The notes below the pieces were generated by a model that searched no databases, was not told the origin of the DNA, and saw nothing but the letters and a program-made list of their open reading frames with translations. From Kudoa neothunni (taxonomy: Eukaryota > Animalia > Cnidaria): DNA of 64,000 nt. A program made the position numbers and the translations under genes. Position 1 is the first letter of the stretch. Each line of letters begins with the position of its first letter. Shown piece by piece: positions 26,217-64,000 of the stretch. The stretch covers positions 9,637,730-9,701,729 of the forward strand of contig OZ199839.1 of assembly GCA_964304625.1 (NCBI GenBank), in the 5' to 3' direction.

Positions 26217-26236
26217 TAATATCAGTTTTTGTTTAA

Positions 26237-36500: not shown

Positions 36501-37377
36501 TGGGAGTCCTCAACTTTTTTTATCCCAAAATAACACATTTTAGATGGTTCCGGATTCTGGAGGGTTATTGTATAAAAAAAGTTGGTGCCACGTTGATAGT
36601 GCATTGACCCAGTTGAAATAAACCAATCTTCCACAGGCTTGATAGGATTTAAAAACACTTTAGGAGATCTATCAGTAAAACTAATAAAGCAGGATGTCAT
36701 GGTCGGGTTTGTCACAAGTTTAACTGTATTTTTTTTTATAAAAATTACTATCTGCAGTTTTGATAACTTCCGAACTACCATCCATTACGGTAGAGATCCC
36801 ACCGTTTCTTTTTGTTTGAATTGTTACGGTAAATTCGCCGTTTAACTTTGTTGCAGATATTATAGTTTTCAGGTAGATATCTAATTAATTTTGTATAATA
36901 AATGTTCAATTTGTCAATTACCTTTGAGTTTATACACTTTTTTATAAGGACATGTCTTTATAGCTGTCTCACCCTTACCTTGGCACCATCTTACATATTT
37001 AATGTTCTTAAAATCATTCCCATCTAATTGTAATGCGACTTTTTTGCAATCAATCATACACATTTTCGACGGGATATCTTCTCGAGCGCTTGTTGTACTA
37101 GTACAAGCAGGAATAACTTTAAGTGATGATGTTGAGACATCGTAATACTGAAGTGAACATTTTCGGTGACTGTTCTCAATATTGTACCCTGCCAATGATA
37201 ACATATATTTATTCTCATTACTCAAAAAGCTTAATCTCAATATATTATTATCAATATCAACTGTAGAGTAAATATTCGAGTGTAACACTAATGAAAAATA
37301 AACATTATGATTAATATTTTTTATTTATTACTTGTAAAAATTGTGACCAATCTAAGAAAAACATTGCTCGTCATCAT
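30531..37377 (-). pseudogene. Copy B of the Cys-rich FN3-like membrane protein, with several frameshifts (pseudogene or consensus errors)
   Basis: Same exon layout as A and C, ATG at 37377, tail KKFSKDTAYEL*. Single-base indels relative to C at about 36730 (A9 vs A8), 35360, 34288 and 33824. Confidence 0.7.
30659..30681. repeat. (TA)n microsatellite in the last intron of B (shorter counterpart at about 52156-52173)
   Basis: Direct observation. Confidence 0.9.
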
Positions 37378-40300
37378 TTGTTCATTGTTATTGAAGTATT
37401 CAACGAGTTATATTAACCATTTAACACCGAAATTAATAAATAATATATTGTAAACCTCTATTTATTTTCTTATCAGTAACTTTCTGATTAAAAGTTTGTT
37501 CAAGGATTTTACTAATGTAAGTTCTATGACAAAAAGTATTTTTTCATTCATTCCTTTTACATTTGAGTTCAAATGGAACCGATGATTAAAAAAAGAACTT
37601 CGTAATTATAATCAATCTATGGAATTAAGGTAATGCCTATTGAAAAGATTGGATTCATACTTCTTTCATATATTCTATCACAATAGGAGTCACTTTCACT
37701 AAGAAATAACTCATTAGCCAAACATGCATTTACCACATGTAATACAATTGTCAAATAACAGCGTGTCCGTTAGTTCCATGCAAAATAAAATGTCGCAAAT
37801 TATCTTCAAAATAATCTATTTACATATAATTTCATTAAATTTTGTTTTAAGAATGTGCTGATTATAATCCGAATGTATTATATTTAATATGGAAAGTCCG
37901 CAGCCCAAGGAAATATTACTTAAAAATATACGAATGAAAATTTTCCAACGCGTTCGTGCCCAATGTTTGTCTAATATATGTAATCGGTTATTCAGTCTAT
38001 GGAAAATTCACTACAGGAATTTCCAGAACAATTTATTTTGGTTCTGAAATATTTTAATTTTTTTCATTCATTTCGATACTAAAGCCATAATCTGTCTTGC
38101 GGACAATAAAATAATATTTATCGCAAATCAATAAAAATTTTGATAATATAATTGCGTAAATAATTATTTTATAATTTTCTTATTTATTTAACCATCCCTC
38201 TACGGAAGAAATAAAATCAGGTTTAATCTGAACCAAGATCACGATGGTACCTCAGGGGGAGAATGGATTATATCAACTTATTGTTCTCATAAACATAAAT
38301 GTCCTTTAATAATAAAAGTTTATGAGTTGAATAGCAATATTTAATAAAGCTGTCCATTATTCTGTGATTTAAATGACATTATTAATCACTCCAATAATTA
38401 CGCAAATAATGAAGCGTGTCTCCCAAAATGAACCAAATTTTCTCAATAAATATATAAAAGCTATTTGTAATGAAAACAGAAGATATTGAAACGATGGAAT
38501 ACAGTAATAAATGAGCCATTCGCAGTATTACTATCGCTGGCTTCTAACCTATGTTAGGTGTCCGTATAAACAGACTAAATATCGAAAACCTTCAAGGCTT
38601 CGTACGTATGCGATACCAATTTTTTGAATTAAAACCTTGAAAAAACTCAATATTATTTTATTTATTATTTAACCCACTAATGAATTTGAGGTAAATTTTT
38701 ACCCAAAAAAGAAGTCTTTGTTTATATACGTGATTTGTTTTCTCTTCGAAGGGTACGGGTTCTTTTCTTATCTTCCAAAAAGGTAAGAAATATACGATTT
38801 TCAAGTATTATGACTAGAAATATAAAATCAAAAACATTATAGCATGTTTGTGCTCCAATGAATATTTTGGGTAAAAAATTACCTCAGATTTTTTTCTCAC
38901 TGATTGATAGACAAAATAAAAATTATTACGTTAATCAAATTATAGTTTTATCTGATGGATAAATTTCGAGTTATATGGTTATTATCTATTGCATCGATCA
39001 CGTAACTTCGTTTTTTAAGTTTGTCATTGCGATAATGGAGATGGATTTCGACGACAATAATTAAAGTGATAAATCAAATTCCTATAAAGTGATTATGAAT
39101 ACTTTAAAACTGATTTGTCATAAGAATCTGACGAGATTAAAAACTTTGAGAATTCAGGTCAATCCAAAATTAGTAATGGTGGGTTATGGTGGTGTCTTTG
39201 TATTTGACTCTCCCTGTCCGGAACGGGGTCCGCATGAACCCCAAATTCGACAAATTTGAACCAAGTCTTAGGCAGACAAATCAAAGTCATTTGTAAATTT
39301 CGGAATTCCCCTTGAGGTTTAAAACCCTTCGAACAATGTAAAAACATTACACTTGAAAAAATTATTATCGGCTAATTTCAATGATTTTTTTTCCTCTACA
39401 GACAAAAATTTATTTCATTTTTCAAGAAAACACGTATATACCGAATAAATTCATTTTTATCTTATAATTTAGGATCGTAGTTTTCGATGTTAATTATGTG
39501 CGCCAATTCTAATGAACAAGTTTTTAACGTCTTCTACATTATTCTCATTTCATGTGTAAATTACAGCGGAATTATAATAAAAAATTATCACAAACTGATC
39601 TTATATTTTTAAAGTTAGGACATTTTTATCGCAAACTAAAAGGTTACGATATTCGACCCGCATAATAAACGTCGAAAATTGCATTCCTTACTTGTAATCG
39701 TAGATTTAAAAATTTAAGACGTAGCATTCAATTATGTGGGTGATGAATCTCAGCACATTATAGAACTTCACCGCGGATTACCGACTCTTGAACCAAAAAT
39801 AACTAATCTAATTTCCGGATGTACATTTCGTTGCTATAAACTTGTCTCTAGAAGGATGGAAATAGTTCCTCGGGTCAACTTTCAATTTTAATGATTATTA
39901 GAGAGAATCAATATTTAGTTAAAAAATCGTGGAATTTTCGGTCTTTCCACTTAACTTTGTAACTATATAAACCTACTTCTGATATTATTAAATTTATAAG
40001 GAAAATGCTCAGAACAGAAAATAAAGTGAAAATTAAAGATTGCATAACAGAAGTAAGACGATATATCTAGTGTTTTCAAATAACAAATTATGTCTGACAA
40101 GAAAAGACGTATAAATCAAATTTAAAGAGTTAATTTGAATTTTACCTTTCATATATACCATAAAAAATTACGTTAATTTATAAATTAAAGCTAAGGTACC
40201 CATATCCAATTTAGTCTGTTTATTATTAACTAGTTGTTTCCGATTTCATATCTAAACGCTGCCGTCGTTGATGTACGCTAGGAATAATTTAACTTGTAAT

Positions 40301-40674
40301 TTCTTATTTAGAAATGATTTTCATGTTCTAAACTACTTTTTTAGGATGGAATCTGTTTAATTTGGATTTTTGTGCCGCTAGATTCTTTCTTACTTTTAAA
40401 TAGCCGATGTTAATGCATTATGGGATTTTGTTATGAAACCTACTAACGCTTCATAACAAATTAAATTTCCTACACAGAAAGTCTTATAAATAGTTTAAAA
40501 TATGACAAAAAGAAGTTAAAAACCAAGAAAACAGTTATTTTTTTAAGTGAGGGCCGACCCCATCGGAACACGTGAATTTTTTCCGAGAAGTACAAGGAAG
40601 ATTAATAGATTTGTTATTTATACATGTTTTCCACATAAAAAGATATTAGGAGACAATATGGTTAGGAGAAAAAG

Positions 40675-42296
40675 GTAACGGTAAAGTATGTGACTCCAGA
40701 AAAACACCATCTTGCGTCCATTTTTTTCCGTTTTTTACGATTATCAATAATAAATCAAAATAGTACTGAGTGCAAATATTGAGCTCAAATAAATTACCTC
40801 AAAATTTTTGCCTAATTCCTATTCGACTACAGTGGGGTACATGTGTAACCCATATCGTTTTGCAATAAACACAGAAAAATAACTGATTACTTGCTTATTT
40901 CGCAAATTATCTAAAATTTCTATTTTTATTATTTTTAATAAAAATGATATTAAATTTTTCTGTGTTTATTTACCACACGAAAATTGCGATAATAGAGCTT
41001 TTAAGTTTAGAGGAGATTATGACTTATCTGGTTAATTAATGATCATGATAGATTATTTTACAAATTAGTAACAAGGAATTACCTTAAAATTGCGACGAAA
41101 AAATGTGATTTTAATTGTTGGAATTTCGAAACCTTTATTTTAAAAAAGAGAAAACTAAATGTAAGGAGACCAATGACAGAAACTTCTTGCTGTGAGAGAA
41201 ATCACATTGATTATGCCTTCACTTACAGCTCTAAAAATTACTTATCTTTTGCGGAATAACGACTTAAGGTAGTTGAGGTATAAAACTAGCGTTTCCCTTG
41301 AAACCGTATTTTTTCTCTAGTATGGCTTCCGTTAGTTCAGCCAACAAATTAACCATAATAAAATAAATATTCGTCTAGAAAATGTTATATTAAAATTTGT
41401 GAAAAAATTTGAACGAGTAAATCTTCATAAAATTGACCATACGTCCAATACATTGTACAACACTTCAGCTAAGCGTTAACATCATGGTAGTTGTTGTAAA
41501 GAATGATTTTAACGTAACATACATATTAAAATTTAAAATCATTTTGTTTAAATGCTTAATTATATATTATAACCATAATGAAACATTATTTAATTAACAC
41601 GAATATCTTTGTCCCAATAAATAAAATTTGTAATGTGTATTAATTATATATTTTATGTCGTATTTAAAAATAAATAGATAAATATACGATTTATTATTTG
41701 TAAAGGTGTTCTAATGTATTATCTTCAGATGAATAAAATACGTATTGATATATTTTTAATTAATGCCTTTATTCGATTTTATAACCAAAAATATCAATGT
41801 ACGATTAATATAATTATTGTTAGTCTCAATTTCGCAACTAATTGGTGTATAAAAATTAGTTCACTAATAATAATGTACTAATAAAAATATATAAACTACT
41901 ATAAACAATTATAGATGTTACTAAATGGTTTAAAGTTAATTTGACATTTAGAAATAAAGATAGATGACACATTACTTATTAATATTAGACTAGCTTATTT
42001 AGAAGGTTTACTACACTAAATTTAGAATGTAAATATTACGAAAATTTAAATGATTATAATATATTAATTAGGATAAAATAAGAAAATAATCAGCTATTTT
42101 TCTGTGTTTATTGCAAAACGATATGGATTACACGTGTACCTGACTGTAGTCGAATAGAAATTGGGCAACAATTTTGAATTAATTGATTTGAGCTTAATAT
42201 TTGCACTCAGTATTATTTTGATTTATTATTGATAATCGTAAAAGAAAAAACGGACGAAATATGGTGTTTTCTGGAGTCACATATTTTTCCATTACC
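40675..42296. repeat. ~210-bp diverged inverted repeat pair (40675-40889 / 42087-42296) enclosing ~1.2 kb
   Basis: For example CTGAGTGCAAATATT and CCATATCGTTTTGCAATAAACACAGAAAAATA on the left, with reverse complements on the right. Confidence 0.9.
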
Positions 42297-42809
42297 GAAT
42301 CTCTCTTTTATCACGTTTTCGCATTTATTTTCAAAAGTATATTAATAAAAACAATTTGTTTTATAACAATGATGAAATGTTAAATGTGATTAATCTATTC
42401 GATCCTTTATATTAATTTGTAGAAATAAACCATTTAGACAACATGATGATAATATCGATATCTGTCAACAAAAATTAAAAAATAAATAAATGCGAATCAT
42501 TAATACAATTTTATTATAATCAACATTATTTTTTTATATTCATCATGAGGTTTGGACGATTTAAAAAAATACATGCAGAAAACTTTCTTAATGAATTATT
42601 ATATCTTAAAGAAGTGTTGTGTAACAAATAAATTATTTTCTGTTCTCAAAAGATGTAGGAATAAGACTTAGTAATCAAGATAAATTTAATATATATTGAT
42701 ATCCATAAATTTTACAAAATTAATTAACATTCTCAATAAAATAAAACTAAAATTTTTGTATCATACCTATTAGTTGGATTTTACTTTGAAAAAGTATTAA
42801 TATTTTACT

Positions 42810-43203
42810 GGTAAAGCTCTGACTTTCATGAATCATAAATCGTCGTTTTGAGATCTATAACCGTAGATAACATTTTATAATTTTGTTCATTTTGTTCAAA
42901 TAAATTAGAGCATCATTAATAGAAATAGTAAATTTTTTAAATCTTTTTTGGTTATTTGTAATTTTCATTCCATTATGAGACTTTCAAAATGGATTCTTTA
43001 TTATCCAAAATCCTATTTAAAGAGAATAGAGATTTTAAGTTAATATAATTCAGAATTTTAGTTGTTCTATTTTTTCCATTCGATATTCTTTCAAAATATG
43101 TCATTGAATCCATTTTATCTTTCAATGAACGAAGCTGTTTGGTTCTCTTCAAGTGTCCACGACCCATCATTTTAACGACTTTATTCTTAAGCCCAGTGTC
43201 CAT
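42810..43203 (-). pseudogene. Unknown decayed ORF in the palindrome spacer
   Basis: The 76-aa ORF (42973-43203) continues in frame past its TAA for another ~47 codons. No recognisable motif. Confidence 0.25.
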
Positions 43204-45392
43204 GAGCCGTAAATTTGAGCTTATTCTTATTTACAGCGAATTAAAACAAAAAATAAGGTTTTAATAATTCATTATAATTGTTATACTTTTAATCGATTTG
43301 TTTTCATTAGTAACATTAATGTGTAAGTCATTAAATCATGGCAGGTGCCTATGAGTAGTAGAGGGAACGAGCCGTCACCTACTGTATTTGTTTATATAAA
43401 CATTGGAAACATTTAGAGTTATAAATCAATAAATACACAAAAGTGTGCAAAATCGGCTACAGACTGTATTTATTATTACAATGTCACAGGTTCAAAAATA
43501 AGATTATATTTATTTATTCATAACGACATTTATCTATATTAAACTTCTGCAAGTGATTAAGAGTGTGTGCTTAGATCACTTATTATACTAGGACTTTCAA
43601 TATATATGACTTTTTAACAACACTATCAAAGTTCTATAGATGACTTTAGATATAACACATATATGTAAATTTACAAAACTAATGAAGAATTGATGGCGTT
43701 TGTTTATTCAGATAGATTCAAACTCTAAATACTGAAACTGAGTCCTCAAATTTCGTGACATTTAATTTTAAGCGATAAGATTTAATATATAGATTGAAAT
43801 TATACGTTTCTAATTATTTAAAATATTTTTGTTTATATTTAGGGGCTACATAATTGTTTTGAGGAAAGAGTGTATGAAAATGTGACTGATAAAGAGATAT
43901 TAATTTGAGCAACAAAAAATAATCGCCGCAAGTTATCATCGAGTCATACAGTTATTGCTATTTTAATGATCTCAATTTTAACTGCGCTTATCACAGTCTT
44001 TAAAAATATGGATTTAAAAATCAAGGTTAATTTAACTACTTCTCTGAATTAATGGAAAGAATTCATATTTTTCTTTATTCTATATACATGTTCTACGATA
44101 AAATATTTCCAATACCGTGCGAAGCTGGGCAATTCGCGCTGGCAAGAGATAAAATAATATTGAGTTTCTGCAAGGTTTGAAGGTTTTCGATATTTAGTCT
44201 GTTTATACGGACACTCAACATAGGTCACAAGCCAGCGGTAGTAATACTGCGAATAGCTCAATTATTACTGTATTCCATAGTTTCAATATCTTCCGTTTTT
44301 ATTACAAATAGCTTTTATATATTTATTGAGAAAATTTGGCTAATTTTGGGAGACACGCTTCATTATTTGTGTAATTATTGGAGTGATTAATATTGTCATT
44401 TAAATCACAGAATAGTGGACAGCTTTATCAAATATTGCTATTCAACCCATAAACATTATTAATATAGGACATTTGTGTTTAGGAGAACCAAAAGTTGATA
44501 TAATCCATTCTCCCCTGAGGTACCATCGCGATCTTGGTTCAGATTAAACTTGATTTTATTTCTTCCGTAGAGGGATGGTTAAATAAATAAGAAAATTATA
44601 AAATAATTATTTACGCAATTATATTATCAAAATTTTTATTGATTTGCGATAAATATTATTTTATTGTCCGCAAGACAGATTATGGCTTTAGTATCGAAAT
44701 GAATGAAAAAAATTAAAATATTTCAGAACCAAAATAAATTGTTCTGGAAATTCCTGTAGTGAATTTTCCATAGACTGAATAACCGATTACATATATTAGA
44801 CAAACATTGGGCACGAACGCGTTGGAAAATTTTCATTCGTATATTTTTAAGTAATATTTCCTTGGGCTGCGGACTTTCCATATTAAATATAATACATTCG
44901 GATTATAATCAGCACATTCTTAAAACAAAATTTAATGAAATTATATGTAAATAGATTATTTTGAAGATAATTTGCGACATTTTATTTTGCATGGAACTAA
45001 CGGACACGCTGTTATTTGACAATTGTATTACATGTGGTAAATGCATGTTTGGCTAATGAGTTATTTCTTAGTGAAAGTGACTCCTATTGTGATAGAATAT
45101 ATGAAAGAAGTATGAATCCAATCTTTTCAATAGGCATTACCTTAATTCCATAGATTGATTATAATTACGAAGTTCTTTTTTTAATCATCGGTTCCATTTG
45201 AACTCAAATGTAAAAGGAATGAATGAAAAAATACTTTTTGTCATAGAACTTACATTAGTAAAATCCTTGAACAAACTTTTAATCAGAAAGTTACTGATAA
45301 GAAAATAAATAGAGGTTTACAATATATTATTTATTAATTTCGGTGTTAAATGGTTAATATAACTCGTTGAATACTTCAATAACAATGAACAA

Positions 45393-48300
45393 ATGATGAC
45401 GAGCAATGTTTTTCTTAGATTGGTCACAATTTTTACAAGTAATAAATAAAAAATATTAATCATAATGTTTATTTTTCATTAGTGTTACACTCGAATATTT
45501 ACTCTACAGTTGATATTGATAATAATATATTGAGATTAAGCTTTTTGAGTAATGAGAATAAATATATGTTATCATTGGCAGGGTACAATATTGAGAACAG
45601 TCACCTAAAATGTTCACTTCAGTATTACGATGTCTCAACATCATCACTTAAAGTTATTCCTGCTTGTACTAGTACAACAAGCGCTCGAGAAGATATCCCG
45701 TCGAAAATGTGTATGATTGATTGCAAAAAAGTCGAATTACAATTAGATGGGAGTGATTTTAAGAAAATTAAATATGTAAGATGGTGCCAAGGTAAAGGTG
45801 AGACAGCTATAAAGACATGTCCTTATAAAAAAGTGTATAAACTCAAAGGTAATTGACAAATTGAACATTTATTATACAAAATTAATTAGATATCTACCTG
45901 AAAAGTATAATATCTGCAACAAAGTTAAACGGCGAATTTACCGTAACAATTCAAACAAAAAGAAACGGTGGGATCTCTACCGTAATGGATGGTAGTTCGG
46001 AAGTTATCAAAACTGCAGATAGTAATTTTTATAAAAAAAATACAGTTAAACTTGTGACAAACCCGACCATGACATCCTGCTTTATTAGTTTTACTGATAG
46101 ATCTCCTAAAGTGTTTTTAAATCCTATCAAGCCTGTGGAAGATTGGTTTATTTCAACTGGGTCAATGCACTATCAACGTGGCACCAACTTTTTTTATACA
46201 ATAACCCTCCAGAATCCGGAACCATCTAAAATATGTTATTTTGGGATAAAAAAAGTTGATGATTTCCATTTTACTTCCTTCTGCTCCAATGTAAATAAAG
46301 CCGGACCATGCTTACAACCATGTTACAAAGCCACAATATTATACGAGTCAAAGTTGGACTTCGCTCAAGTACTTGTATACCGTCCCAATATATTCACTTC
46401 AAAAGAATTTGTCCAGACAGTGACATGTATTCATCAATAATTTTATAGTTTTTAATAATGTGATTAGTTGAAAGAAATCAACCTACTGCTACCTCTGTAA
46501 CTAATACTCAAGCTACGTTCAACCTTAATAAAATAAGTACACTGGAATCTGACACGATTAATATCAGGTCTGCCTCTATTGGCGAAATAAAAATAATAAG
46601 AAAATATGATGGAATAAATATCGATAAGGATCCAGAATGCATCAATTCTTCTCGGTGCAGAAGTTTTACTTCAATTACTTTGAGCAATCTGTCACAGCTC
46701 ACTGAATACATTTTAAAGGTTAAGATAATTGGATTTGATGATCATGATTCATATGTAGTAAAATATCATAAATATTTATATTTCAAAACAAAAGGTACTC
46801 TTTAATACTTATGAGTGAACTAAATTTAAGTAGGAGCTGGATTTGAATCCGGTAGAAGTATTACACCAAGTACCGCTCAAGATCATCCTACAAAATTAAC
46901 TCTAACTCCGAGCGGACTCTTTTCCGATGGGACTAACACGGATGCAAAATGTGAACTTTATTATTCATTGGCTGACAGTGAAGCATCAAAATTTCCTGCT
47001 ACTTGTGATATAGATGGCATTAATAAATTTTGTGTTAATGCGTGTACAAGCACCTTTACCATCGTAAATCTTGAACCTAAAACAAATTACAAAATAACAA
47101 TCTGCTCGAAAGGATACACCTGCGAAACAACCAATCAATCATTTGAAAGTAGTTTAATATATATTGAAAAGTAATGAATAATTTAATAGCTGGCGGAATT
47201 TCTCTCTCAATTTTTATAAGCAATAACGATACTAATAGAAAAACGACGGCTTCAATATCAGCTACAAATGGAAATCTCGGAAGCAACTGGGCTTATATTC
47301 TCATGGAAAAAACTTCTAAGAATACAATAATTGATTGCTTGAATAATGCTTGCAGTCCTATTGTCACAGAAGGAGAAAATAAGATATTAGAATTTCCATG
47401 GACGACTATAATCGCGGAAATTACATACCAATTAGTTGTAATAAATACAAATACTGCTAAACCCGTAACTCAAGATATAAAAAGTATAGATTTTATGATA
47501 AAATAAAATAATATTTTATAGGGGTGGCTGAGGAAATTGTTACTGATAATATGATTCTAAAATACAATTCAGCAGAAAACACATATAAAATTAAATTTAA
47601 AGGCGATTTAATAGTTTTGGAGGGAAAACAGTGTTCTGTTAAGAAGTCTGATAGCAAATTAACTACTTATGAAAATATAAGCCAAGAGGGTGAAGTTACA
47701 AAAAGATGCACTAATTTAGGAGAAGAGATTAATATTAATATCGGCAATAAATATAAATACATATCAGTCACTTATGATGATAAAAAAACTGTAACTAAAA
47801 ATAACCCATCCAAATCCAGCTCTAATCCTAAAATTTTGGTCAAACCAGATGGTTCAGATACTGAACATTCCAATGGTAGAGAAGAAGGCCACGATGATCA
47901 TTTGCAGAGAAAAATAGCCGGATCACACTCCCGGTCTCTTGAAGAACCACCAGCTTCAATAACAGAGGACGTCCATTTTAAAAGGGGATATGTTTATTCT
48001 TACTCTATGGGTATTTTAATAATTTACTGAAGAGTTTAATATCCTTTAGATAATTTCGAAGAAATATCGATGATTGCAACTTTAGATGGTGATAAAATAA
48101 AATTAGGATCAAATAAATGTTCATTAAATTGTGAAGCAAGTAAAGATGGTCAAAAGCTCAAGGAGATAACCAAAAATGAGGACCCGTGTAATTCATTTGG
48201 TAGCTATTCCATTCCATTTGGTGAAAATACTGAAGATTACTTTATCAGTTGTCCTGGATATTTTGATTTTCATTACTTTTACGATACCACCTTTACGAAA

Positions 48301-51300
48301 AAATATGCTCCAATATTCAGTAGATTTTATTATGAGCTGACTGTCAATGAAAATGATAGAAAACTCACCGTGAAATTAGTCAATGAGATGCCATCCGAAA
48401 TATGCACGTTTGAATGGATAGATGCAACTGATTCATCTTCAGACACATTCTTTTCGAACAGGTGTAAAAATAAGGGAAATTGTTTTCACACGATCTGTAG
48501 TAAAATAACGTTTGAAAATATACCAGCAGAAGTAAAGGCAGTTAAAATACGCGTCTTAAAATTAGGAATGGAACCAGTGATTGGTTACCAATCAAACGTC
48601 CACATTCGTAATATTCGTTATTATAAATTTGTTTTTTATTTATTAAATATAGTAAAACATGGAAGAGATATTCCCTTAAAAACAAAAGATAACAAAATAA
48701 TAGTCGACCTTAATAATAAGAATAAGAATGAGGATGGTACAGAAGTTAACACACAACCTGTTCCATCATGCTCTTTGAAGCACTGGAACGCCTACGCTCC
48801 GATTGAATCCATTAGTTTGATGGAATCCTTTACTAATCCACCTGGCTGTGAATTCAGTGAAGTTGAGCTCACACCTGATCCAACAGATTTACCTTATGTT
48901 GTAATGGTAAGAGTAATAAATTTACCAAAATATTTCCCAAGAAAATATTTTTATCATAAATTAGGTAAATTATTTACTTTATTATGGTTTTTAATTTATT
49001 TGTAAGACCAAGGGACGAATCTTCCAATTCAAGAAGGTTCAGTCTCATCTACCGCAAGTGGATTCGCACTTACTCCTGGTGGATCAGCCTCAACCAAATG
49101 CACTATCTATGTGAAAGAACACAGCTCAAAATATTTTTATCCTGCTATTTGCAATACGAAAAAATTATGTGTAGATGCGTGTAACACAGAGTTCACTATT
49201 ATTGGGCTGTATTCAGGTGTCAACTATGATATAAAAATTGTGTCTAGCGGATCATACAAGGTTAAAACATTTGAGAACAAGAAAACAAGTAACCTTATTT
49301 TTCTATAATTTATTAAATGCTTAATAGTCGGAACTAATATTGAATTTAAAATATCTGAGGAGTCAAAGAAAAATAACCTGAAAATAACTTACACGAGAGA
49401 AATTGCTAATTCTGAAACTATTGATTGTTATTACCAGTTGTATAAACACGAAACCGATGAACGTAATAATATGGGTTTAATTCTTCTACAATATTTTAGG
49501 TTCGCCAACAATTATTCAAAAATCCTGCATTGAATGCAATACAGAGAGTCTTAAAAAGTGCAGTGATATTCAATTCGATGACAGCTTATATAATAACAAA
49601 TATAACTACAGGCTGATGATTTATGCGAATGCACAGTCACCACCAGTGAAAATCGCGATTCCAGGTATAATAGTTATGAATATTTGTATAAATGACCTAT
49701 AGCGTTTTCTCGACACGGAAAACTCCAACAAAGTTACGTTGAGAATAATGCTGGGAGTGTCGATAAGTTTTCTATTGCACTTTCAGAATTTCCCAGTGGA
49801 AATAATTGTGTGATAAAATTATCAAACTTTGAGGCAACACCTGACTTAACTGAATTAACATGCATAGGGAACATAAATGGAGGATCTTGCATAGTAAACT
49901 GCCCAACATCTAATAAGGTTGAGGTTGGTTTCTTGAATTCTAAATTAGACCGATATGTATCGATTTGTTATGGTGTGGATGAAACTGAAGCAAAATTGTG
50001 CAAAAAAGTGAATGTTTTCATCATTAAAATGGGTAAAATTTTAATCACCATCATAATAAATAATTTATTTTTTTAAATCTTTAATGTATTAATTTCTTTT
50101 TTAAATTGTTAATTGTAGAGTACAAGCTGAAAAATACTTACAAAGTCACATACAATGATAATAAAGTCATCTTTTCGTACGAGTCAAACTCAAAAACCGA
50201 ATGGAATATAGGTGTTGATGGAAAAGCCAACACATTTAGCAACACTGAGAAGGATACATTGACCATATCGAAATATTCAAATTCCATAGAGACAAAATCT
50301 GTTTCCCTCTCACTAGACAGATTTATGAGTTATTATAAAATTGATTCTACGCTTATGTGGCCTGGATTAATTTACTACGTTAATAACACATACTTGATCA
50401 AAAATGCTCCATTAAATTCTCAAATGATATTCAATGTTTCAAGTATTTCCAACAACCATAAAAGCCTAAAAATACATTTCCCACCTGGCCCTTCCAACGA
50501 TGAAATGTGTCATATAAAGGTTTTTGAAGTAAATCCAGATGGTTCAGATAACGTAAACGTGTTAAATGCATGCGGGGGTCTAAATGATGGTTGTTATCAA
50601 CTTTGTCAAGACGGTTTTATCAATTTAACGAAAGAATATCAAAAAGTAGGTGTAATTATTAACCGAAGATTTGATGTAGTTGAATACAAACAATATCATA
50701 AAAGTAATTGAATCATTAAGTTTCGAAACTTTATATTTTTAGGGGGTGATCTTGGCGTTAATTTATCTGCAGTCACTGCATCTGGAGTAACACTCACGGG
50801 ACTTAATATTTATGATAGCATTAAAAATAAAGATGGAACTTCAGAATGCACCATTAAAATATCTAAGGCTAACTATATCTCAAACGAAATGAGTGCTACC
50901 TGTAGTCCTAATAGAGAAGCATGTTCCACTAACTGTCAAGCGTCAAGCATGATTTCTAATTTGGAGGCTGGTACAAATTATCTGTTATCAGTGAAGATTA
51001 CAAATCTTGGTTTTTCTGGAACTTATATTAAGAAGATGATATTTAGAACTTGTAATTATTATAATAATTATTTTATTTCTACTTTAAAATAGTGGATGGA
51101 GATGAATTAAAAGAAAATACTACTCCAGCTGTCATATCACCCAGTACCGCTATATTCACCCCATTCCAAGATGATGGTGATTTTCTTCCAATATGCAGAG
51201 TCTACCTTAAAAAAGAAGGAGATTCGACTCAAAAATACATGGCAGTATGCAAAGATATGGGAGTCTGTGAGGGCAGCTGTTCCAACAATTTCGAAGTAGT

Positions 51301-52302
51301 TAACCTAGCGCCAGAACAAAACTATACAGCTTTTGTGGTACCGTCTGATGGCAAGAAAGAAAGAACCTACGATATTGAAGCAGGTATAAGCTTTACACGG
51401 ATTTAATAAAACATATTTTTTAGTGATAACTAAGTTAACAGTTACATATACACTTAAAGAAGATAGTGATTTAACAATTCATGTTGATTTTATTGGGAAA
51501 ACGAATAATTCAAAATGCCCCTTCATGTTGCACGAGAAAACACTGAACGAATCGACAACGTCACTAACTACGTGGTGTAACGATGAGGAGGATTGTTCAG
51601 CTAATCAATGTGTGATCAAAATTAACGATCTTTCAAAGGAAAAAGACTACGTGCTAATGGTAAAAGTGAAGGATGTTACAACCTATAAAAAACATGAAAT
51701 TCAGTGTAAATTATTTTTTTACATTCAAATAAAAAGTGTATGAATTAATAATAATACTTATCGGTTTCAAAAGATTCTAAAGTTTCCCGAATGACTGGGT
51801 AATTGAAATGAATTAATTTTTGTAAATTAATAATATTTTAGTAACTTTATTATAATAATAAGCTGAATCTAATTATAAATAGAAGAACAACAGCTAAGAA
51901 GTGAATATACAAACATTGAGGTGGATGACATTGTTGGAAAAGTCATAAGAATAGTTGAAACAGGGTATTCTGTTGTATTATGTACGCTTATTCTAATTAT
52001 AATTTAGTATTCTTTTTGATTACTATCTTTTAATCTAATTCATGGATTGATAATACAGGCAAAGACAAGTATATAGTTGAGAAGAATAAAATTAAGTAAA
52101 TAAAATAGGCTTTTCTTTAATAATTTTAATTTAGATCCATTAACATGTACATGTAATATATATATATATATATACGGTGGAGCGTGTGCTTATTATTATC
52201 ATTAGACTCTATTCGATAATCCCAATTATGCTCATATTGGTGATAATGGTGTGTTTTGCCGTCTATAAAAAATTCTCCAAGGATACTGCTTACGAATTAT
52301 AG
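45393..52302 (+). CDS. Copy C of the Cys-rich FN3-like type I membrane protein (apparently intact, A/B mosaic)
   Basis: Signal peptide MMTSNVFLRLVTIFT|MLHSNIYS, the same intron positions as A, and last exon LYSIIPIMLILVIMVCFAVYKKFSKDTAYEL* (TAG 52300-52302). Confidence 0.82.
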
Positions 52303-52607
52303 ATTATAGTTACTAATTAGTTTAGTAGATGATATTCAGTAGTGAGAAACCATGTTATTTTTTGATTTATTAATATTATTTTGGTACAATACGTTATCGA
52401 TTTTTTGGAAACTCCTTGCAACCAGGGAAAAGTTGCTGAATATGCATCATTTATCGATTTTACGCACGTCTTCGATTTGCGTGAAAAGAATTTAAAATTT
52501 ATTGTATTGAAATATTACAGTATTTCAATTCCGAAATGCGATCATCCTCAGCATAAAAAATATCTTCAAGTCAGCTATCTCCAATTTTTCTGTAGTTAAA
52601 TGACATC

Positions 52608-54302
52608 ATCTATATATATTAACCCTCAATATGTAACCTTGGGCTCGACGAGCCTGTCGGGATTAATTTCTATCCTTTATTGGGTTAATTTTAAACTATA
52701 TTTGTCTGGTTTAGCACGTTATTGCGTGATAAAAAATGTGATATACAATCAATAATTTATTTTGAAGGACACTCAAACAAACAATTTTTTTATTGAATGC
52801 TCGTTACATATATTGTTGTTACAGACATCGCATATTTGTTTGTCACTCATTATACATGTAGGACACAAATTACATCGTTTCTGATCATTTATATTGTTAT
52901 TTTCAGTAAATGTCGAATAATTCTCGTTGAATTTAAACAAAACTGGTTCAAGGGGACGCATTAGGGCAGGTTGACATCAATTTTTTTGGTCTTCGGCTCT
53001 TCATTTTGGTGGCTTAAAATAAAAAATCTCGAATTCATTGAAAATTCAAAACGATGTGTAATATAAAATACTAACAATTTACATAAAAAAAATTTAAAAA
53101 AAAACATTTTTTGGATGACTTATACTTATGCTCAATTTATGACTCAGAGGGGCTCGTGGAGCTCAAGTTCACCTATTAAGGGTTAAGTCCCTTGTCTGTC
53201 AGTGTGCTCCCGTAAGTGGACATGTACGACTTAAATTTTTTAAAAATCACCACGCTTCAAAAAATCTTTTAATTGTTTTCACACCACCAAATGTTCCCAA
53301 AGGTGTTTCTAAAATAGTGATTTTGTCGATTTAAAGTTTGTTTGTGGGATTACATGAGTTCAACTACAGGGTTAGAGTGTGCTGATGCCATGGTGATGGT
53401 CGGTTGAAATTAATTTTCTCCCTTATATTCTCTATCATATGTTAATTGAACGATGTCACCTGTCTTTGCATATAAGATTGACGCGTTCATTTTATTGTTT
53501 GCGCAAATAAATTCCTTATGTCGGGAGTTTAATGTATTTACTTGATAAATACATTTTGAAAACTCTATTAATGGGTTTAGATATGAGAAAATGTCAATAT
53601 TCGCATTATTACTGAGTTGGTTATGCGTGTTATAATTAGATAGATTGAAGCACTATAACGCAAGTATTGTGTCCATAGATTTCATTGAAATCGTCCGTTA
53701 TGTTGAACTTTCAGTGATTTAATTTAATGCAGATGCTTATATGCTTATTTCATCTTATTATTTTAATTATTTATGTTGACGTAGGCGCGATTTGTGGTTG
53801 TTTGTTGAAAAAAGTGCATCAAAGTTTATGCGGACCAAAGGTTATTAATTTGAGTAATATCAATTAGTTTCCGTACGTTTTCTTCGATCTCAATTATTTT
53901 TTCTCTTTTTTTATCCCTTAAGAAGTTAGTAGTGCTCACATTTTCCAATCTGAGCCAGAATTCGACTTTAAAAATTCACCAGCCGAAAAATAACGCATCA
54001 GATTGCATTTGAAGAGAATTCAAATAATTAGGAAACGAAAATAAATGTGATTCTGAACTTAAATTATTTAGCGTTGGTGCCATGGGACAAGAAATTGTTC
54101 ATTAAAAGCCGGGATTGATACACTCCTGCATACAACTGATCATTACTTAAATTTCGAAATCAAAATCGACAACGTATGATGCTTAAAAAAATTTAGTTTG
54201 ACTGCTTCTATGAATCAATTTGAAACAATATTTTTTTGAATGTTATTAAAAAACGTCTCTATGCGAAATCTTCTCCAAGCAACGCTGGGCAGTTCGCACT
54301 AT
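52608..54302 (-). mobile_element. Mirror copy of the probable Helitron-like element
   Basis: Reverse complement of 28585-30278. Confidence 0.45.
52623..53182 (-). mobile_element. Mirror copy of the CRD-only piggyBac derivative
   Basis: TTAA at 52619-52622 and 53183-53186. ORF 52773-52961 translates identically to 29925-30113. Confidence 0.88.
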
Positions 54303-54740
54303 TTTTTGTAAAAATATACATTTTTATATTTTCCGAATCTTACATAGTTTATTATTTTATATCATGTCACATATTGACTTAAAAAAGCTCTAAATAAAAT
54401 TAAAACTTTGCACCAGAAATTAATTTGCTTGGTCATATAACATTATCATTCTTTGTTTTTATAATTATTAAATAGAAAATAGGATTTGTTTAAATGATTC
54501 CAATTTTTGGTGATCTATACATTGGGCATCCGATTTTACACACTGTGGACCCTACGTAACATTTTTGTGTCTTTCACGTTGTTTATATTTTTAAACGCAT
54601 TTCTTTAGTAAGTTTTAAAACAAATTTTATTTTTTAAATTAAGTTAATCTACTTGAAAGTACGTAGAGTCCTTAGTGATGTAATTAGTGAGAGTGCCTCA
54701 TTGCGTTCCAACTGTACACGCATAAGATTTATATTGTTAA

Positions 54741-56636
54741 CCTTCCGGATGGAGTACGCGCAAAAATTACTACGCGAGTCCACACATGGGGTCTAAAAGA
54801 TCCCACGAAGAAAATGATGAAAATAATACGTTTTATTCAATAAAATAATTATCGTTTAACAAAACAATCATCGCTTATAGTTTTATAATGTTTTTTGCAA
54901 ATATTTCCCCAACAAACATTGCATTTTGATTGCGTTTTACGATCATTTTGCCTAACACATAAATGACATCGTCTTCTATCTGTAGCGGTAGGTATTTTGT
55001 CACATTCTTTTATTTTTGCCTCATCTACATTAATATTATTAATACATAAATTAATTTGTACTTTTGCGATTCATTTGTTACTCTAGCAATTGTAATGCTA
55101 ACGATTTTAAGAATTCTTTTCTCCGAATATTTTGCTTCGTATTTAAACAATAAATTACATATGAATTGATTGAAACTACATTTAGGAGCGCATGAAATAT
55201 TACTGCTGGTCATCTTCTGGTAGTTCGATAGGTAGAATAATTGGCGCACATTTGGTCGATTGTGTCCCCACCTCCCTTGATGGAATTATAAAATGAAATC
55301 ATTTCTGGGGATGATTTGAATCTATTATTGGTTTATGGTGAAAAAAACTCAATAATATGACAAGTTTGTTTTTTTTCGAAGTGTATGACAGCAATGTAAA
55401 ATCGTTGGTAAAATCGAACATGGATGAATATAGCTCTTTTGTCTTCGAAAATAGAAATTCCGAAGGAATCTCCTTTTTACTTTTTCTAATAGTACCACAT
55501 GCAGTGATACCACGTTTCAATAATTCTTCGAAGAGAGGAACTGAGGTAAACCATTTATCTACCGTAATGTTTCTACCAGAACCTAAAATCGGTTCTACCA
55601 ATCGCAGTACTAAACATTAGGTGAGTTGTCAATTTTATGAATGCCAATATTTTGAGCACCTAAGAATACCTCAATATTTAAGGTATAAAATGTTTTAGCA
55701 TCAGCCGTATTAACGATGTTTATGCCATATTTTGCAGGTTTTAGAGGCATGTATTGATTAAAAATACAGTTGCCTCTGAACCCCCAAAGCATTTCGTCAA
55801 TTGTTAAATATTCGGTTGGAGTATAATATTTTAAGAAATTAGATTTTATGCGGCTAATAACATCTCTAATTTTAAATGATCTATCATTAGAGGGCTCTAA
55901 TGATATTGACAAATCGTTCGTAAAACGTATACAACGTTTCAATAACTTAAATCTATTTTGGCCGAATACTTTGTTGCAAATGGGAAATCCAAAGATATCA
56001 TCTGCCCAGAGTTCATTCATATTAGTTAAATTAGCTTTTTTTACGCCAAGAAAATAATGTAAACCTATAAACGTTTTTAATTCACATAAATTAAATTCAA
56101 CGCAATCTCTTTTTCGTTTGAAATTAGTTTGTATTTTTTTAGTTGGTCATTTGTAAAATGTAGGATGTCTTACAGTATTTCGTCTATAATAAATAAGCTC
56201 CATATCTCAGACTCCGTATTAACATTATCAGGAAGATTGATTTGATGTTTTTCTTGAATAATATGTTTTCTTTTTTTGCCGAACAAACCGACTGGATTAG
56301 GCGACCATTCATAATTCTTCCCATGTAATGTTTCCTTATTAATTATTAATGTTTGAACAGTCATCAATCAATTCATCATCGCTAATGTCTTTTGACATAT
56401 CAGAATCAGATATATCACTGTTTTCTGATAGTATGTTATCCAAATAGGGGTCAAAGCTATGTCTCCGAATCCGACGAAAACGTATCACTGCTATCACAAT
56501 GTAAAAAATTTTCAAAATTCATATCTGATATATCTATAATTTTTGTAAAAAAAATATGCGAATGAAATTAATTATGAGTCACTAGCTTAAACCAAAAACT
56601 TATTACAGCGATATTAAAACCACGTGCTACGGAAGG
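54741..56636 (-). mobile_element. Mirror copy of the inactive piggyBac
   Basis: TTAA at 54737-54740 and 56637-56640. Transposase fragments show several substitutions relative to the arm-1 copy. Confidence 0.92.
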
Positions 56637-56656
56637 TTAAACAAAAACTGATATTA

Positions 56657-58772
56657 TAGGGTTTTTCTATCTAGTACGATATTTTTGCAACCTAACTCGA
56701 CCTCTTTGCAAACAAACTCAATACAAAATAGACCACCAAAAAACACATCAATAAATTTTTCAAAAAAATCGTTAATGATTCTACATATTGTTTATTCTAA
56801 AATTATCTTCCCCCGAGACGATCTGGAAAGATATCCTAACATTTTGCGAAAGAAATTATCGCAGTGGGAAGGAGTGATTTGTTGAAAACATTCTGATATT
56901 GCCATCTTCAATTCGTTTTCATTTTTTCTCTGCCTTCTAAACACCAAATTTTCCCAGACGGAAAATGCATTTACAATCGGATTCAAAAAAGGTGATTATG
57001 AGGGAAAAAATTTAATGTTTAGATTTTCTTCCAAAATCACAGTTCCAAGGTCTTTGTAGTGATGTATTCTAGTATTACTCGTAGCGAATAACAGGTCTCC
57101 TATCATCTTTTCCCTGCAAACGTTCTTCAATTCGACGAGACGATGTTTGAAATCGTCACCAGTGACAGCTTCGTCGTGAATCTTGTGGTAAATCATGGAA
57201 TTTTTATTAATGGCAGCAACCACAGAAATGTTTCTGCTCGGGACGACTCTGACGAAGGCATAAGCAGATGTGCCTTTTAAGAACTACCTCACTTTGGTCT
57301 CGTAACAACTGAAAATCCAACTTCATATAAAAAGATTATGTTCTCATGTCGTACCGACACTTCCAAATTTCGAAAAATGTCGGAGTATTCTTTCCTTTTT
57401 TCCAAGGTCGATTCACAATTTCCCCTTTCAGACACGGTCACTAAAGTTGTGAATGTGTAGTGAAATTCACCAATCACTCGATCTTTGATACTAATAGACA
57501 CATTTAAATTTAATTCATCCAAAACCTTTTGCTTGAGCTCCTTTAGCTTTATCATGGAGTTTTCGTCTATCCATGAAATAATTTTTTCTCTCTGTCTAAT
57601 AACAAAATAGAACGTTTGTCACCTCCTCTGGGTTTCAGTTCTATGACTCCTGTCTTTTAGAACTTCGAAATTATTGTGGTCATGGTAGACCTTGGTAACT
57701 TAATTTGGGAGGCAATTGTAGTAGTGCTCATTTCCAAAAGAATAAACCCATGTATTTGCCCCTTTTTACTCGTGAAAATCTTAGTTATTGGTTCTGTTCC
57801 TGCGTTGATATTTGAACAAGAGAAATTTCATGTTCACAGGAATCTGAATCTGATAAGCTCTCAATATTACCATGGTGACGATCCATAACTAATATTATTT
57901 AAAGTAGATAACGTGGCAAGTTTGTTAAATAATGTGGTAATTGTAATCTTGATACAACATTATAATCAGAAACTCGGATTTTTATTGAAAAATAAATGAT
58001 AATTTTTTAAAGGAAAATAACTAATCCAATCCTTCATGTTTGAGAAATACCCAATGATGGTCCATCCTTTTTATGTTTATGTTATGTTTTATCATTAAAT
58101 TCATGCATTTAATCAAAATTGTAAATGTTATGCTTTATATAATAAAATAAGTAACATTCTGAATTTTACTAATTGTTTGCTTCATCGTTTATTTTTTGGG
58201 AAGTAGCAAATATTACATCAAAGATGAAATTTCTTATCCATAACATTTTTTAAATAATTAATATTAAAAATTAATGAGTTAATTCGATTATATCCATATA
58301 TTGTTATAAAATATACGAGGTTATAATAAACCAAATAATTGTGTTAAATTTATCCTAAGGTGTCGATTTAAACAATTATTGTTCCGTGCAGAATAAAAAC
58401 TTTGTTAAATTAAGTTACAATATTTACTCTTGGATTTATTTGTTTCATTCTATTAAGAAAACAATGTAATGCTGTCATATTGGTGTGTTCACCACGAAAA
58501 ATTTAATAAATATCATGACCACTACATTTCCTTTAATTTTTTTATCTTAAAAACATATTTTATGTTTATTTAAAAATTTAACACTTATTCAAGATATAAT
58601 TTTAATTTTAAAACACAGAAGGCGTCATTCTTTGCTACACACGTATTTTTGTCTATTAGTTTTATGGATCAAAAATTTGAGACAATTTCTTAATCTAAAT
58701 AATTATGTGCTATGAAATAATTAGGATTGATTTTTTGACACTAAAATTATCGAGTTAGATCGATAAACCCTA
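56657..58772 (-). mobile_element. Mirror copy of the Tc1/IS630 element
   Basis: Reverse complement of 24102-26216, including TIRs. Confidence 0.88.
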
Positions 58773-59062
58773 TAATTATTATGATTTATAACTTATATCT
58801 TATAATAATATCAATGGTTTTTGGAAGGTGATCATATTTATCCGATATAAATAGTTACTTTTTCATATGATATTATGTAATGAATGACTTTTTTGAGATT
58901 CTATAAGAAAAAAATACCCGTGGAATGAACTATTATATGTTATGCGTATTTTATATATTAGACAGAAAAATACAGGTTTGATAAAAGCTTTTTCATCTGA
59001 TAGAGGCGTTCCTGGAACTGCAAAATATCAATCCTTACTTTCAAACTAACACGATAAATAGT

Positions 59063-59118
59063 GGAAGTGAGGTCTCTTATGGACCCCACTTCCGAAAGGA
59101 AGGGATACAGAGAGTTAA
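59063..59118 (-). mobile_element. Mirror copy of the orphan piggyBac-like terminus
   Basis: Reverse complement of 23756-23811. Confidence 0.45.
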
Positions 59119-59352
59119 AGGAGACAAATACCTGCAAACAATAAAATACTTATATTTCCTTACCTTTTATCGAAAGAAAAATCTTTATTTCTCCAATTTT
59201 TTAAATTACGGAGATAAATTTACCTATTGACATCATAAAATAACTCTAAAATGAACTAATAACACAACATTGATGAATCGAAAACTAATATATTTCCCTA
59301 ATTAATATCATCTAATCATAATCTATTCTGTTAATTAGTATGTAATTATAAT

Positions 59353-62300: not shown

Positions 62301-62656
62301 TTATTGCCATCTATTATAAATGTGTTAAATTTAGATAAATTATATCACTTGTTTGCTTGTTCAGCACTTCTAAAACATTATAATTTCCACTGGGTACAAT
62401 TTTAATATCGTAGCTAACGCCAGAGTAAAGTCCAATAAGGTTAACCGGTGTGTTGCAAGTGTTTACACACAATACATCGTTGGTACATATAGCTGGATAA
62501 TAAACATTCTTTGAATCATTATTTTTTACGTAGATAGTGCAGGTGGCTGAGGACGCGGATGTGCTAGGAGTGAAAGAAAATCCATCTGCAGTCGGTGTAA
62601 CCCCTACTTCTCCAGTTGAAAGTGTTGATGATTGAGCTGTATAAAGTTTATTACAA

Positions 62657-62691
<35 letters not shown>

Positions 62692-64000
62692 TAATGAATA
62701 CTTGTTTTGTGATAAAAAAATTTTCTTGGAGAATAACCTGGTATATTTGTTATTTTTATCATAATATCATTATGTAAATGAGTTGGATTCGGTGCTATAT
62801 CCATCTCAGCGAAAACACAGGATGAAGGGTTAGTAACAGCTTTCCTTTCATCTTCATTTACCAATGGAGCATACACATTCCAATAGGTCAACGAACATGA
62901 CACAACTGGTGTGCCGCTAACTTCTCCACCATCTGCATTTTTATTATTAGCGCTAATATCAATTTTTATGTTGTTGCCTGATGTTATCACAGTTACATCA
63001 TTTCCATGCTTCACTAAATAATAGAATTATGATTTTGTATAAGATTAATATATTACATATGTAGATATTGTTTTGGTAGCCAACAGTAGGTAGCATTCCC
63101 AGCTTTAAGACACGAATTTTGACTGCTTTTACGCTGTCTGAGATATTTTCAAAAGTCACATTATTACACATACTGTATAAACAGTTTCCTTTATTTTCAC
63201 AAGTATTAGAAAAAAAATTATTTGAAGAAGACGCGGTTGCGTCTAACAATTCAAACGTACAAATCTCAGATGGGCTTTTATTTACCAATTTTATTGTAAG
63301 CTTTTTATTTTCAACATTGGATAATTCGTAATAAAATCTACTAAAAACTGGTGCATTGTTCTTAACAAATTCGTTGTCGTAAAAATAATGGAAGTCGAAA
63401 TGTTGTGGGCAGCTGATATAATAATCTTTAACTAATTCATCGAATTGAATTGAGTAGCTGCCAAAATCAGAACATGAATCAACCTCATTTTGTGGTATTC
63501 TGTTCTGTTCTAGATTGTCTTTGTATACTTTGCAATTTAACGAACACTTATTAGATCCCAATTTTATGTTATCTTTATAAAGTGATGCGATGTAAGTTAT
63601 TTCCTCATAATCATCTTTAAAGAATTATATCTATATATCAACTATGAATTACCTATGAAGTACGAATAAACTTTTCCATTTCTGAATTGGACCGTTTGTT
63701 TGGTTGCTCCTGCTGGCTCTGGTGGTTTTTCAACAACGCTTTCGGTTACCTCTTCCCCTTCTGTAGGTTTATGAGGTTCGGATGATGAAGGAACATCGAT
63801 TTCCTTAGAATCTTCGTAAGTATAAGAAATATAATTAAGCTTATGATAATTATAAAGGCTAATGACGGACTCTTCATTTAGTGTGCTGCATTGTTTTTGA
63901 AATACGGAGTTGCTTTCTCCGACATCTTCATAACCTAATAAATCATTTTTGGACCTTTTTATTGTACATTGTTTCTTATTTGCCTCTGAAGGGATATCTT
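59353..64000 (-). CDS. Copy D (most divergent paralog); 5' part lies beyond the window
   Basis: Exon 7 to the end is homologous to A/B/C, with open frames where checked. The terminal exons are nearly identical to A (tail KKLSTDATYDL*). Confidence 0.8.
62661..62688. repeat. (TA)n microsatellite in an intron of D
   Basis: Direct observation. Confidence 0.9.

Follow-up and report, generated by a model that had tools for sequence, protein, structure and literature searches.

Ectopic gene conversion is well established for multigene families that lie in clusters; it can be recognized where diverged neighbours share short stretches without a difference, even at silent and intronic sites, and where trees change from one segment to the next. 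The same signature is found in the gene analysed here, termed copy C, from the tuna parasite Kudoa neothunni, with no difference in mechanism; only the lineage (Myxozoa) and the gene family differ, and both are new for this process. Indeed, our searches found no earlier account of gene conversion in myxozoan parasites, and no paper covering Myxozoa or the gene family of copy C for ectopic gene conversion.

Several described systems come close to this locus. Human Y palindrome P6 (PMC3723533) likewise has long inverted gene-bearing arms around a unique spacer (arms of 16 kb and a spacer of 5.6 kb in Kudoa). However, arm identity in such palindromes lies above 99.9%, against 94.3% over the whole Kudoa arm. 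Among parasites, the ves1 genes of Babesia bovis, with segmental conversion tracts of about 109 bp on average (PMC7485966), and the VSG genes of Trypanosoma brucei (PMC3708902) are multigene surface families with mosaic members, in which tracts measure tens or hundreds of bases, as seems to be the case here. The Kudoa proteins are nevertheless unrelated to these and the donors are neighbours only. Antigenic variation of the ves1 or VSG kind is characterized by donors from all over the genome, by a single active expression site with mutually exclusive expression, and by new mosaics that arise during a clonal infection.

Closer in taxonomy, conversion was suggested as a source of diversity for the Alr genes of Hydractinia (PMC9546547), which resemble the Kudoa locus in architecture: both are cnidarian clusters whose products span the membrane once and have divergent FN3-like folds (predicted for Kudoa). 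Yet Alr proteins carry V-set and I-set Ig domains and often ITAM or ITIM tails, whereas in copy C, Cys-bearing FN3-like modules fill approximately 1,900 residues and the tail, of 11 aa, has neither motif. Finally, the Giardia-type VSPs of the myxozoan Sphaerospora molnari (10.64898/2026.02.11.705288) are also multi-copy, Cys-containing proteins with a single transmembrane helix and a short basic tail, but possess more than five CXC/CXXC motifs in an ectodomain of 300–700 aa, compared with one CXXC and no CXC in the 1,959 aa of copy C (ectodomain approx. 1,900 aa). Antigenic variation has been reported in myxozoans, its mechanism being unknown (10.64898/2026.02.11.705288).

Material and methods

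The window, i.e. the whole stretch of 64,000 nucleotides analysed, lies on chromosome 2 of a diploid assembly built from HiFi reads (approx. 7x), from which haplotigs were purged; short-read polishing is not reported in the genome paper, whose main text apparently does not discuss the gene family (no mention of paralogs or gene families). Copies were compared in a seven-copy alignment, and a pairwise conversion scan covered 15 of the approximately 65 copies (105 pairs). The read check relied on contigs from four runs of one sample, the pieces listed being shorter than 800 bases. Structure models were made for two modules of copy C, exons 9 and 10.

Results and discussion

Exact A-type tracts in copy C

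Copy C is probably a real mosaic, in which non-allelic gene conversion has acted repeatedly between neighbouring members of a family of large, putatively surface-exposed proteins. At both ends it matches its inverted partner B, as the first-pass annotation had stated (1144/1152 positions at 45100–46250, 524/527 at 49674–50200 and 2031/2108 at 50200–52300, i.e. 96–99%), and background identity between A and C is about 80% overall. Inside, two tracts are identical to A (table 1), with A-type markers spanning 48617–48898 and 49347–49673. Exon 9 (48653–48964) agrees with A at 301 of 312 positions versus 222 of 312 for B, and the stretch 49300–49675 at 375 of 376 versus 332; the first half of exon 10 (49011–49190) is B-like (166/180, versus 149/180 for A). 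The reversion to B-type sequence falls in intron 12, where the annotation had placed it, between a last A-type site at 49673 and a first B-type site at 49682.

Table 1. Features of the palindromic cluster and of copy C (positions within the window).
Feature	Position	Strand	Remarks
Copy A	16647–23520 (approximate)	+	direct-orientation paralog, 28,764 bp upstream of C
Left palindrome arm	22500–38600	.	A 3' end, intergenic DNA with transposon relics, B
Copy B	30531–37377	-	inverted partner of C
Non-palindromic centre	38601–44179	.	5.6 kb, gap-free; C-proximal part homologous to E upstream DNA
Right palindrome arm	44180–60375	.	C, intergenic DNA, D 3' end
Copy C	45393–52302	+	22-exon gene model, open frame of 1,959 aa
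E-type patch in C	47121–47330	+	exon 5 end, intron 5, exon 6 start
Exon 7 segment	47622–47810	+	C groups with A; B groups with E and the D/F clade
Older homogenised stretch	48221–48610	+	A, B and C approx. 97% alike; 124-bp exact A=C match at 48221–48344
Tract 1	48553–48855	+	303 bp, exactly A 19789–20091; exon 8 end, intron 8, most of exon 9
B-type island in exon 10	49011–49190	+	between both A tracts
Tract 2	49330–49681	+	352 bp, exactly A 20566–20917; exon 11, intron 11, exon 12, intron 12 start
A-type to B-type switch	49673–49682	+	within intron 12
C/D exact match	51629–51761	+	133 bp, equal to D 60024–59892; A differs
Copy D	59350–64000	-	3' half only; scaffold gap begins one base beyond the window

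These tracts are not owing to chance, as the longest run of A-type informative sites reaches 71, whereas none of 2000 permutations exceeded 9, and the markers form 206 runs versus 578 ± 14 expected. A GENECONV-style test and trees by segment, close to the checks proposed by the annotation, point the same way: the A–C runs cover 183 and 198 polymorphic sites (permutation maximum 40), and tree topology flips at the tract limits, from (B,C) with 100% support outside (exons 2–4, 13, 14 and 15–17) to (A,C) with 99% support and zero branch lengths inside (exon 9 and exons 11–12). Introns 8, 10 and 11 are 100% identical between A and C, and synonymous differences are absent from the tracts (0/40, 0/25 and 0/31) compared with a pS of 0.33–0.62 in unconverted exons, which bears out the earlier argument from intron identity for conversion at the DNA level. 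Identity at silent and intronic sites rules out protein-level selection or convergence, and RNA-templated conversion is rejected because the tracts contain introns.

The more parsimonious direction is from A to C, with A as likely donor of both tracts. As assembled, copy A is not B-type across the tracts (if a different chromatid carried the reciprocal product, it would escape view), and no hidden donor of B-type exon 9 or exons 11–12 was found elsewhere in the assembly, where a search with B-type exon 9 matched only A and C, at 75%. However, among the 40 listed read variants, 9 agree with neither of the two copies A and B, so that the assembly lacks donors or alleles and the A-to-C direction is tentative. 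Identity between A and B at the four tract ends is 1.00, 0.80, 0.88 and 0.92 (median 0.78), the first end only being within the top 3%.

Other patches in the cluster

The claim that part of exon 7 is A-like stands in a weaker form. Copy C is indeed closer to A at 47626–47810 (160/191, versus 101/195 for B), but the match is inferior to the exact tracts and B is the odd copy. A recent A-to-C tract is thus unsupported here; an exact A=C match of 54 bp suggests an older exchange, and the tree groupings (table 1) make B the likely recipient.

Likewise, the description of C as a patchwork of A-type and B-type segments holds for both types but overlooked an E-type patch, around which the segment tree joins C and E (94%); intron 5 of copy C is 98% identical to E, versus 64% to A and 64% to B. 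Exchange is accordingly several-way, among A, B, C, D and E. It is also recurrent, to judge from the older, decayed tracts shared by A, B and C in exon 8, by C and E around intron 5, by B and E in exon 7–intron 7, and by C and D near the 3' end.

The palindromic cluster as assembled

The copies follow one another as A (forward) and B (reverse), then C (forward) and D (reverse), with E (forward) outside the window. As assembled, the palindrome has arms of approximately 16 kb, and signs of a sex chromosome were not seen. Palindromes with arm-to-arm conversion are characterized by arm identity above 99%; the present arms reach 99.0% in intergenic DNA, and fall to the whole-arm value given above because third copies overwrite gene patches.

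The mosaic of copy C is best read as local, DNA-templated ectopic gene conversion among neighbours within this palindrome. As the block that runs from the A 3' end to B is nearly repeated, in inverted orientation, by that from C to the D 3' end, C could pair either with B, in palindromic register, or with A, in direct orientation at 28.8 kb. The first pairing would keep most of the gene 96–99% alike between B and C. A break in C may also have been repaired, presumably by homologous recombination, on A as DNA template, two tracts of approximately 300–350 bp being copied with their introns; as a result, most of the FN3-like module encoded by exon 9, and the exon 11–12 module, would now derive from A.

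Alternatively, the exchange could be real and the labels wrong: B and C (with A and D) would be divergent haplotypes of one A–B unit that a low-coverage assembly placed head to head, or else the haplotype would change within B along the contig, so that differences between B and C would be allelic and the palindrome artefactual. We consider this unlikely, although a diploid, purged assembly of low coverage, the 99.0% identity of intergenic arm DNA, a contig end only 3.6 kb past the right arm and read alleles matching neither B nor C are all consistent with it. So is the state of copy B, whose exons carry about nine indels of a single base; these all fall within 36737–33825, clustered where B and C differ most; at one of these sites a B-type read contig has no gap, and the middle of copy B looks like one uncorrected read. 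Against this stand a centre that is non-palindromic and gap-free (no N gaps from -29,999 to 64,000 in window positions) and upstream DNA of B and C that is unrelated past approximately 1.2 kb, each resembling the upstream DNA of another paralog. Contig depth in X1 and X3 is 31–32 where B and C are identical versus 7–8 in C-unique DNA, indicating about four copies, a pattern absent from X2 and X4. In any case, the tracts identical between A and C would still require conversion.

Read contigs across the junctions

Several C-specific junctions are confirmed in read contigs, whereas the intron-12 junction and long-range phase rest on the assembly; the contigs being short, no single molecule spans a whole tract. 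Across the B-to-A switch, the contig at 47581–47787 shows no substitution and one gap relative to C, against 41 differing sites for A and 92 for B, and the contig at 49046–49233 differs from C once (A 27, B 10). A third, at 48782–48985, was found in all four runs and has an exon 9 whose body is A-type and whose end is C-type, with 5–6 differences in the three records listed (52 sites for B). The left edge of Tract 1 lies within 64 identical bases, beyond phasing by 31-mers.

These contigs bear on the idea that the A-type tracts are a chimera of assembly or read correction, absent from any real molecule of C. Perfect tract identity, low coverage, an A–C signal that alone is the strongest of the 105 pairs and an intron-12 junction not displayed directly in reads could suggest as much. 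This is however very unlikely: no short-read polishing is reported and C-specific junctions occur in the runs, all four of which also hold a C-like allele with A-type exon 9 and private changes; HiFi reads are much longer than either tract, and the types alternate A–B–A inside 1.1 kb; and correction cannot yield decayed tracts at 84–97% identity.

Range of exchange within the family

Copy C is one of approximately 65 close paralogs (at least 150 matches for the family), and the family appears lineage-restricted, with 10 relatives, none named, among 1.84 billion representatives. Six of the 105 pairs gave a significant signal, five of them within the local cluster, and distant paralogs were almost without signal. 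Family-wide shuffling in the manner of VSG or ves1 is therefore not supported among the 15 copies tested.

A role of such conversion against host immunity may be envisaged. That the family forms a variant surface repertoire, in which conversion within palindromic clusters makes new module combinations during a single fish infection, is quite improbable; if true, it would explain how antigens vary in an animal parasite lineage, a mechanism so far missing. Least probable of all are tracts left by regulated antigenic variation, in which an expressed copy receives segments by conversion in the course of a fish infection, as for Babesia ves1 or trypanosome VSG: the size of this family of type I membrane proteins, the intact frame of C, in which Tract 1 brings the A-type residue to 33 of 80 codons where B differs, the additional mosaic alleles in one fish (unphased and not assigned to clones) and the reported myxozoan antigenic variation all fit, but exchange is limited to neighbours and multidirectional rather than toward one copy, many tracts are old and decayed, and the stretch was not found in any RNA run searched.

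The intron-12 switch point alone would hardly surprise a specialist, conversion being a textbook process. At this locus, nonetheless, module swapping can be mapped within a large family of myxozoan membrane proteins that appears restricted to its lineage, and the exact junctions can be assayed across pseudocysts and fish. For this family, any test of orthology or selection has to proceed segment by segment.

Domain architecture of copy C

From its sequence and the structure models, the product of copy C is predicted to be a type I membrane protein with FN3-like modules. The open frame begins with a signal-like stretch, continues with modules on symmetric phase-1 exons and ends with a single transmembrane helix before the tail. 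An exon-by-exon Pfam search gave no match above cut-off, fibronectin type III (PF00041) scoring best at 15.7 bits (exon 5, E = 0.018) against a gathering cut-off of 25. Neither structure model had a match at E = 0.001; the top matches of the exon 9 model (pLDDT 63) are FN3 (E = 0.009), and the exon 10 model (pLDDT 89) has seven strands, with FN3 scaffolds as top PDB matches (TM 0.64, E = 0.015).

Mosaic structure of copy C

Copy C is one of four paralogous putative surface-protein genes (A to D) in the window, with B as its inverted palindromic partner and A as a direct-orientation paralog upstream. The first-pass annotation had described C as a patchwork of A-type and B-type segments, and all of its coordinates hold in our alignment of the copies. 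A and C are 80% identical overall, and both tracts listed in the table match A exactly, at the same constant offset of 28,764 bp. As claimed, the first half of exon 10, between the tracts, is B-type, and the switch back to B-type sequence lies in intron 12.

Coordinates of the features discussed (window-based unless marked C2, for chromosome 2)
Feature	Position	Strand	Remarks
Copy A	in window	+	paralog
Copy B	in window	-	paralog
Copy C	in window	+	paralog
Copy D	3' half only in window	-	cut by scaffold gap at 64001
Tract 1 of C	48553-48855
Tract 2 of C	49330-49681
Switch point	49673, 49682		last A-type and first B-type site
Palindrome arms	22.5-38.6 kb, 44.2-60.4 kb		inverted near-copies; gap-free 5.6-kb centre
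Broken transposase-like frames	25175-27673, 55302-57618		duplicated in both arms
Third transposase-like copy	69085-70358		96%; just beyond second gap
Indel cluster of B	33825-36737		within 2.9 kb
Exon 7 linker	47811-48010		hypervariable
Tail introns	51798-51882, 51964-52058
Inner GT-AG introns	51799-51841, 51965-52007
Malate dehydrogenase gene	201-1220	-	intronless; closest match 74%
Near-identical family pair	C2 9.46-9.49 Mb		20 kb apart
SSU rRNA 3' fragment	C2 5426127-5426748		beside GATA repeat

Along the 1,602 informative sites of C, the longest A-type run spans 71 sites (permutation maximum 9), and the sites fall into 206 runs versus 578 expected. A GENECONV-style test on six copies found two A-C runs, 183 and 198 polymorphic sites long, versus a maximum of 40, and the grouping in segment trees changes from (B,C) to (A,C) and then returns to (B,C), with 99-100% support. 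Tract 1 yields 33 A-type residues in 80 codons, and tract 2 yields 17 in 97.

The proposal of conversion at the DNA level is equally borne out: introns 8, 10 and 11 are fully identical between A and C, as are silent sites (synonymous differences of 0/40, 0/25 and 0/31 within the tracts, versus 33-62% in unconverted exons). This silent and intronic identity rules out both protein-level selection and a spliced (RNA) template. The process in C is most likely ordinary non-allelic gene conversion. In exon 9, B is separated from A and from C by the background distance (pS 0.58), and no further donor for a B-type exon 9 was found in the assembly; a single A-to-C event would therefore be the simplest, though tentative, account of this exon. 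At site 48823, a C-like read allele carries the letter common to B, D, E, F and G, A and C sharing another; the last exchange between A and C is thus dated as recent, whichever way it ran.

Support from sequencing reads

The assembly holding the window comprises 40.26 Mb in four contigs. The published K. neothunni assembly (40.2 Mb, three chromosomes, N50 12.0 Mb; host yellowfin tuna) was built with hifiasm-meta from approximately 7x parasite HiFi reads, with Hi-C scaffolding and purging of haplotigs; the published methods mention no polishing with short reads (Weber et al. 2025, PMC12239612). Our read check used four 2021 runs, all from one sample. Their summed read-contig depth in C-unique DNA, roughly 25, is higher than the HiFi coverage of 7x, and these runs are therefore probably more than just the reads assembled.

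Taken together, we judge it likely that C is a genuine mosaic produced by repeated non-allelic gene conversion among neighbouring paralogs, real in the assembly and probably real in the animal. In a contig family over 48782-48985, the body of exon 9 is A-type and the end of the exon C-type; its members show 5-6 differences, three of which occur in neither A nor C, and variants of the family are present in all four runs. The contig over 49595-49926 shows five differences, two of them named; because B differs at five sites on its A-type side, it cannot be plain B, and it fits the intron 12 junction, the letter at 49673 not being displayed. The left edge of tract 1 is not phasable with short words.

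Mixing of haplotypes is an improbable source of the C/B pattern, favoured by the following observations. Nine of the 40 listed read variants match neither A nor B, and therefore further alleles or copies exist. Moreover, B carries about nine single-base exonic indels, all within one cluster; a B-type read contig is ungapped at one of these sites, so a single uncorrected read may underlie the middle of B. Alternatively, the indels may mark B as a pseudogene. That the A-type tracts are purely chimeric is very unlikely, as read contigs match C over 47581-47787 (no substitutions and one gap, A differing at 41 sites and B at 92) and, with one difference, over 49046-49233. Read contigs also match C across its unique linker region, 47758-48131.

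Palindrome and probable exchange among neighbouring copies

Further copies lie downstream (E, F, H) and upstream (G) of the window. The palindrome arms are 99.0% identical in intergenic DNA and 94.3% across their whole length, and their outer limits lie inside A and D; these two copies show 55-80% similarity upstream of the limit and near identity downstream. By eye, the transposase-like frames in the arms resemble mariner and piggyBac.

More than two copies have exchanged sequence. Intron 5 of C is 98% identical to that of E, with which C groups there; intron 7 of B is 100% identical to that of E; C and D agree over 133 consecutive bases close to the 3' end, and A and B share matches of 96 and 86 bp. 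The A-like patch reported in exon 7 of C is correctly placed, but C does not appear to be the changed copy: in this exon B falls with E and the D/F clade, and a change in B would explain the patch better. Among 15 copies (approx. 50 others, including other clusters, lay outside the scan), six of 105 pairs show a run beyond all 2000 permutations, five of them being A-C, B-C, A-B, C-E and B-E. Among the copies compared, exchange follows proximity.

The geometry resembles that of Y-chromosome palindrome arms (PMC3723533), although the Kudoa arms are broken by third copies. The outcome is similar to segmental conversion in Babesia ves1 (PMC7485966) and trypanosome VSG (PMC3708902); family-wide donors, the sole feature compared, were not found among the 15 Kudoa copies. 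Within the Cnidaria, the closest comparison is with the Alr cluster of Hydractinia (PMC9546547). Our literature search, most subscription papers being outside its scope, returned no paper on myxozoan paralog conversion or on this family. The mechanism is known; the gene family and lineage are unfamiliar. According to the S. molnari genome preprint (10.64898/2026.02.11.705288), how myxozoans vary their antigens is unknown, and the mapped junctions of C make this question testable.

Gene model and protein family

The model of C comprises 22 exons and encodes 1,959 amino acids in an open frame, every intron through exon 17 being in phase 1. Spliced models were joined in local analysis alone, and databases were searched exon by exon. 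The N-terminus is signal-like by eye, and a single strong hydrophobic segment near the C-terminus precedes an 11-residue tail. Pfam gave nothing beyond one sub-threshold fn3 match; AlphaFold predicts beta-sandwiches for the exon 9 (pLDDT 63) and exon 10 (pLDDT 89) modules; their closest matches in the PDB are FN3 domains, none of which reaches E 0.001. The predicted product would thus behave as a modular surface protein of type I, and we do not class it with Pfam FN3, the VSPs or Alr.

A genome search with exon 8 found approximately 65 loci at 50% or greater amino-acid identity, and the total was at least 150 matches (345 candidates). For a genome of 5,316 predicted proteins (PMC12239612), this is a very large superfamily of membrane proteins. 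Beyond this genome, a profile search retrieved 10 unnamed relatives among 1.84 billion proteins; the four contigs inspected are AT-rich, and those spanning two exons keep intron positions matching C.

The exon 7 linker differs in length and sequence in each copy, and read contigs that match it exactly, present in each of the four runs, confirm the form found in C. Both tail introns resemble [D1,2] stwintrons, for which our literature search returned exclusively fungal papers: removal of the inner intron would place the preceding G next to a T, creating a second donor. The frame of C needs this reading of both introns, and the geometry is conserved in A, B, D, E, F and G.

Exon 8 of E contains several in-frame stops (broken copy or assembly error). 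The near-identical pair (99.6% across 6.7 kb, with a scaffold gap in one) is a recent duplicate or a retained haplotig. A strict-filter search for SSU rRNA found the tabulated fragment as its sole match. The closest malate dehydrogenase match and one surface-family relative share source run SRR31175926, which is probably another myxozoan-infected sample.
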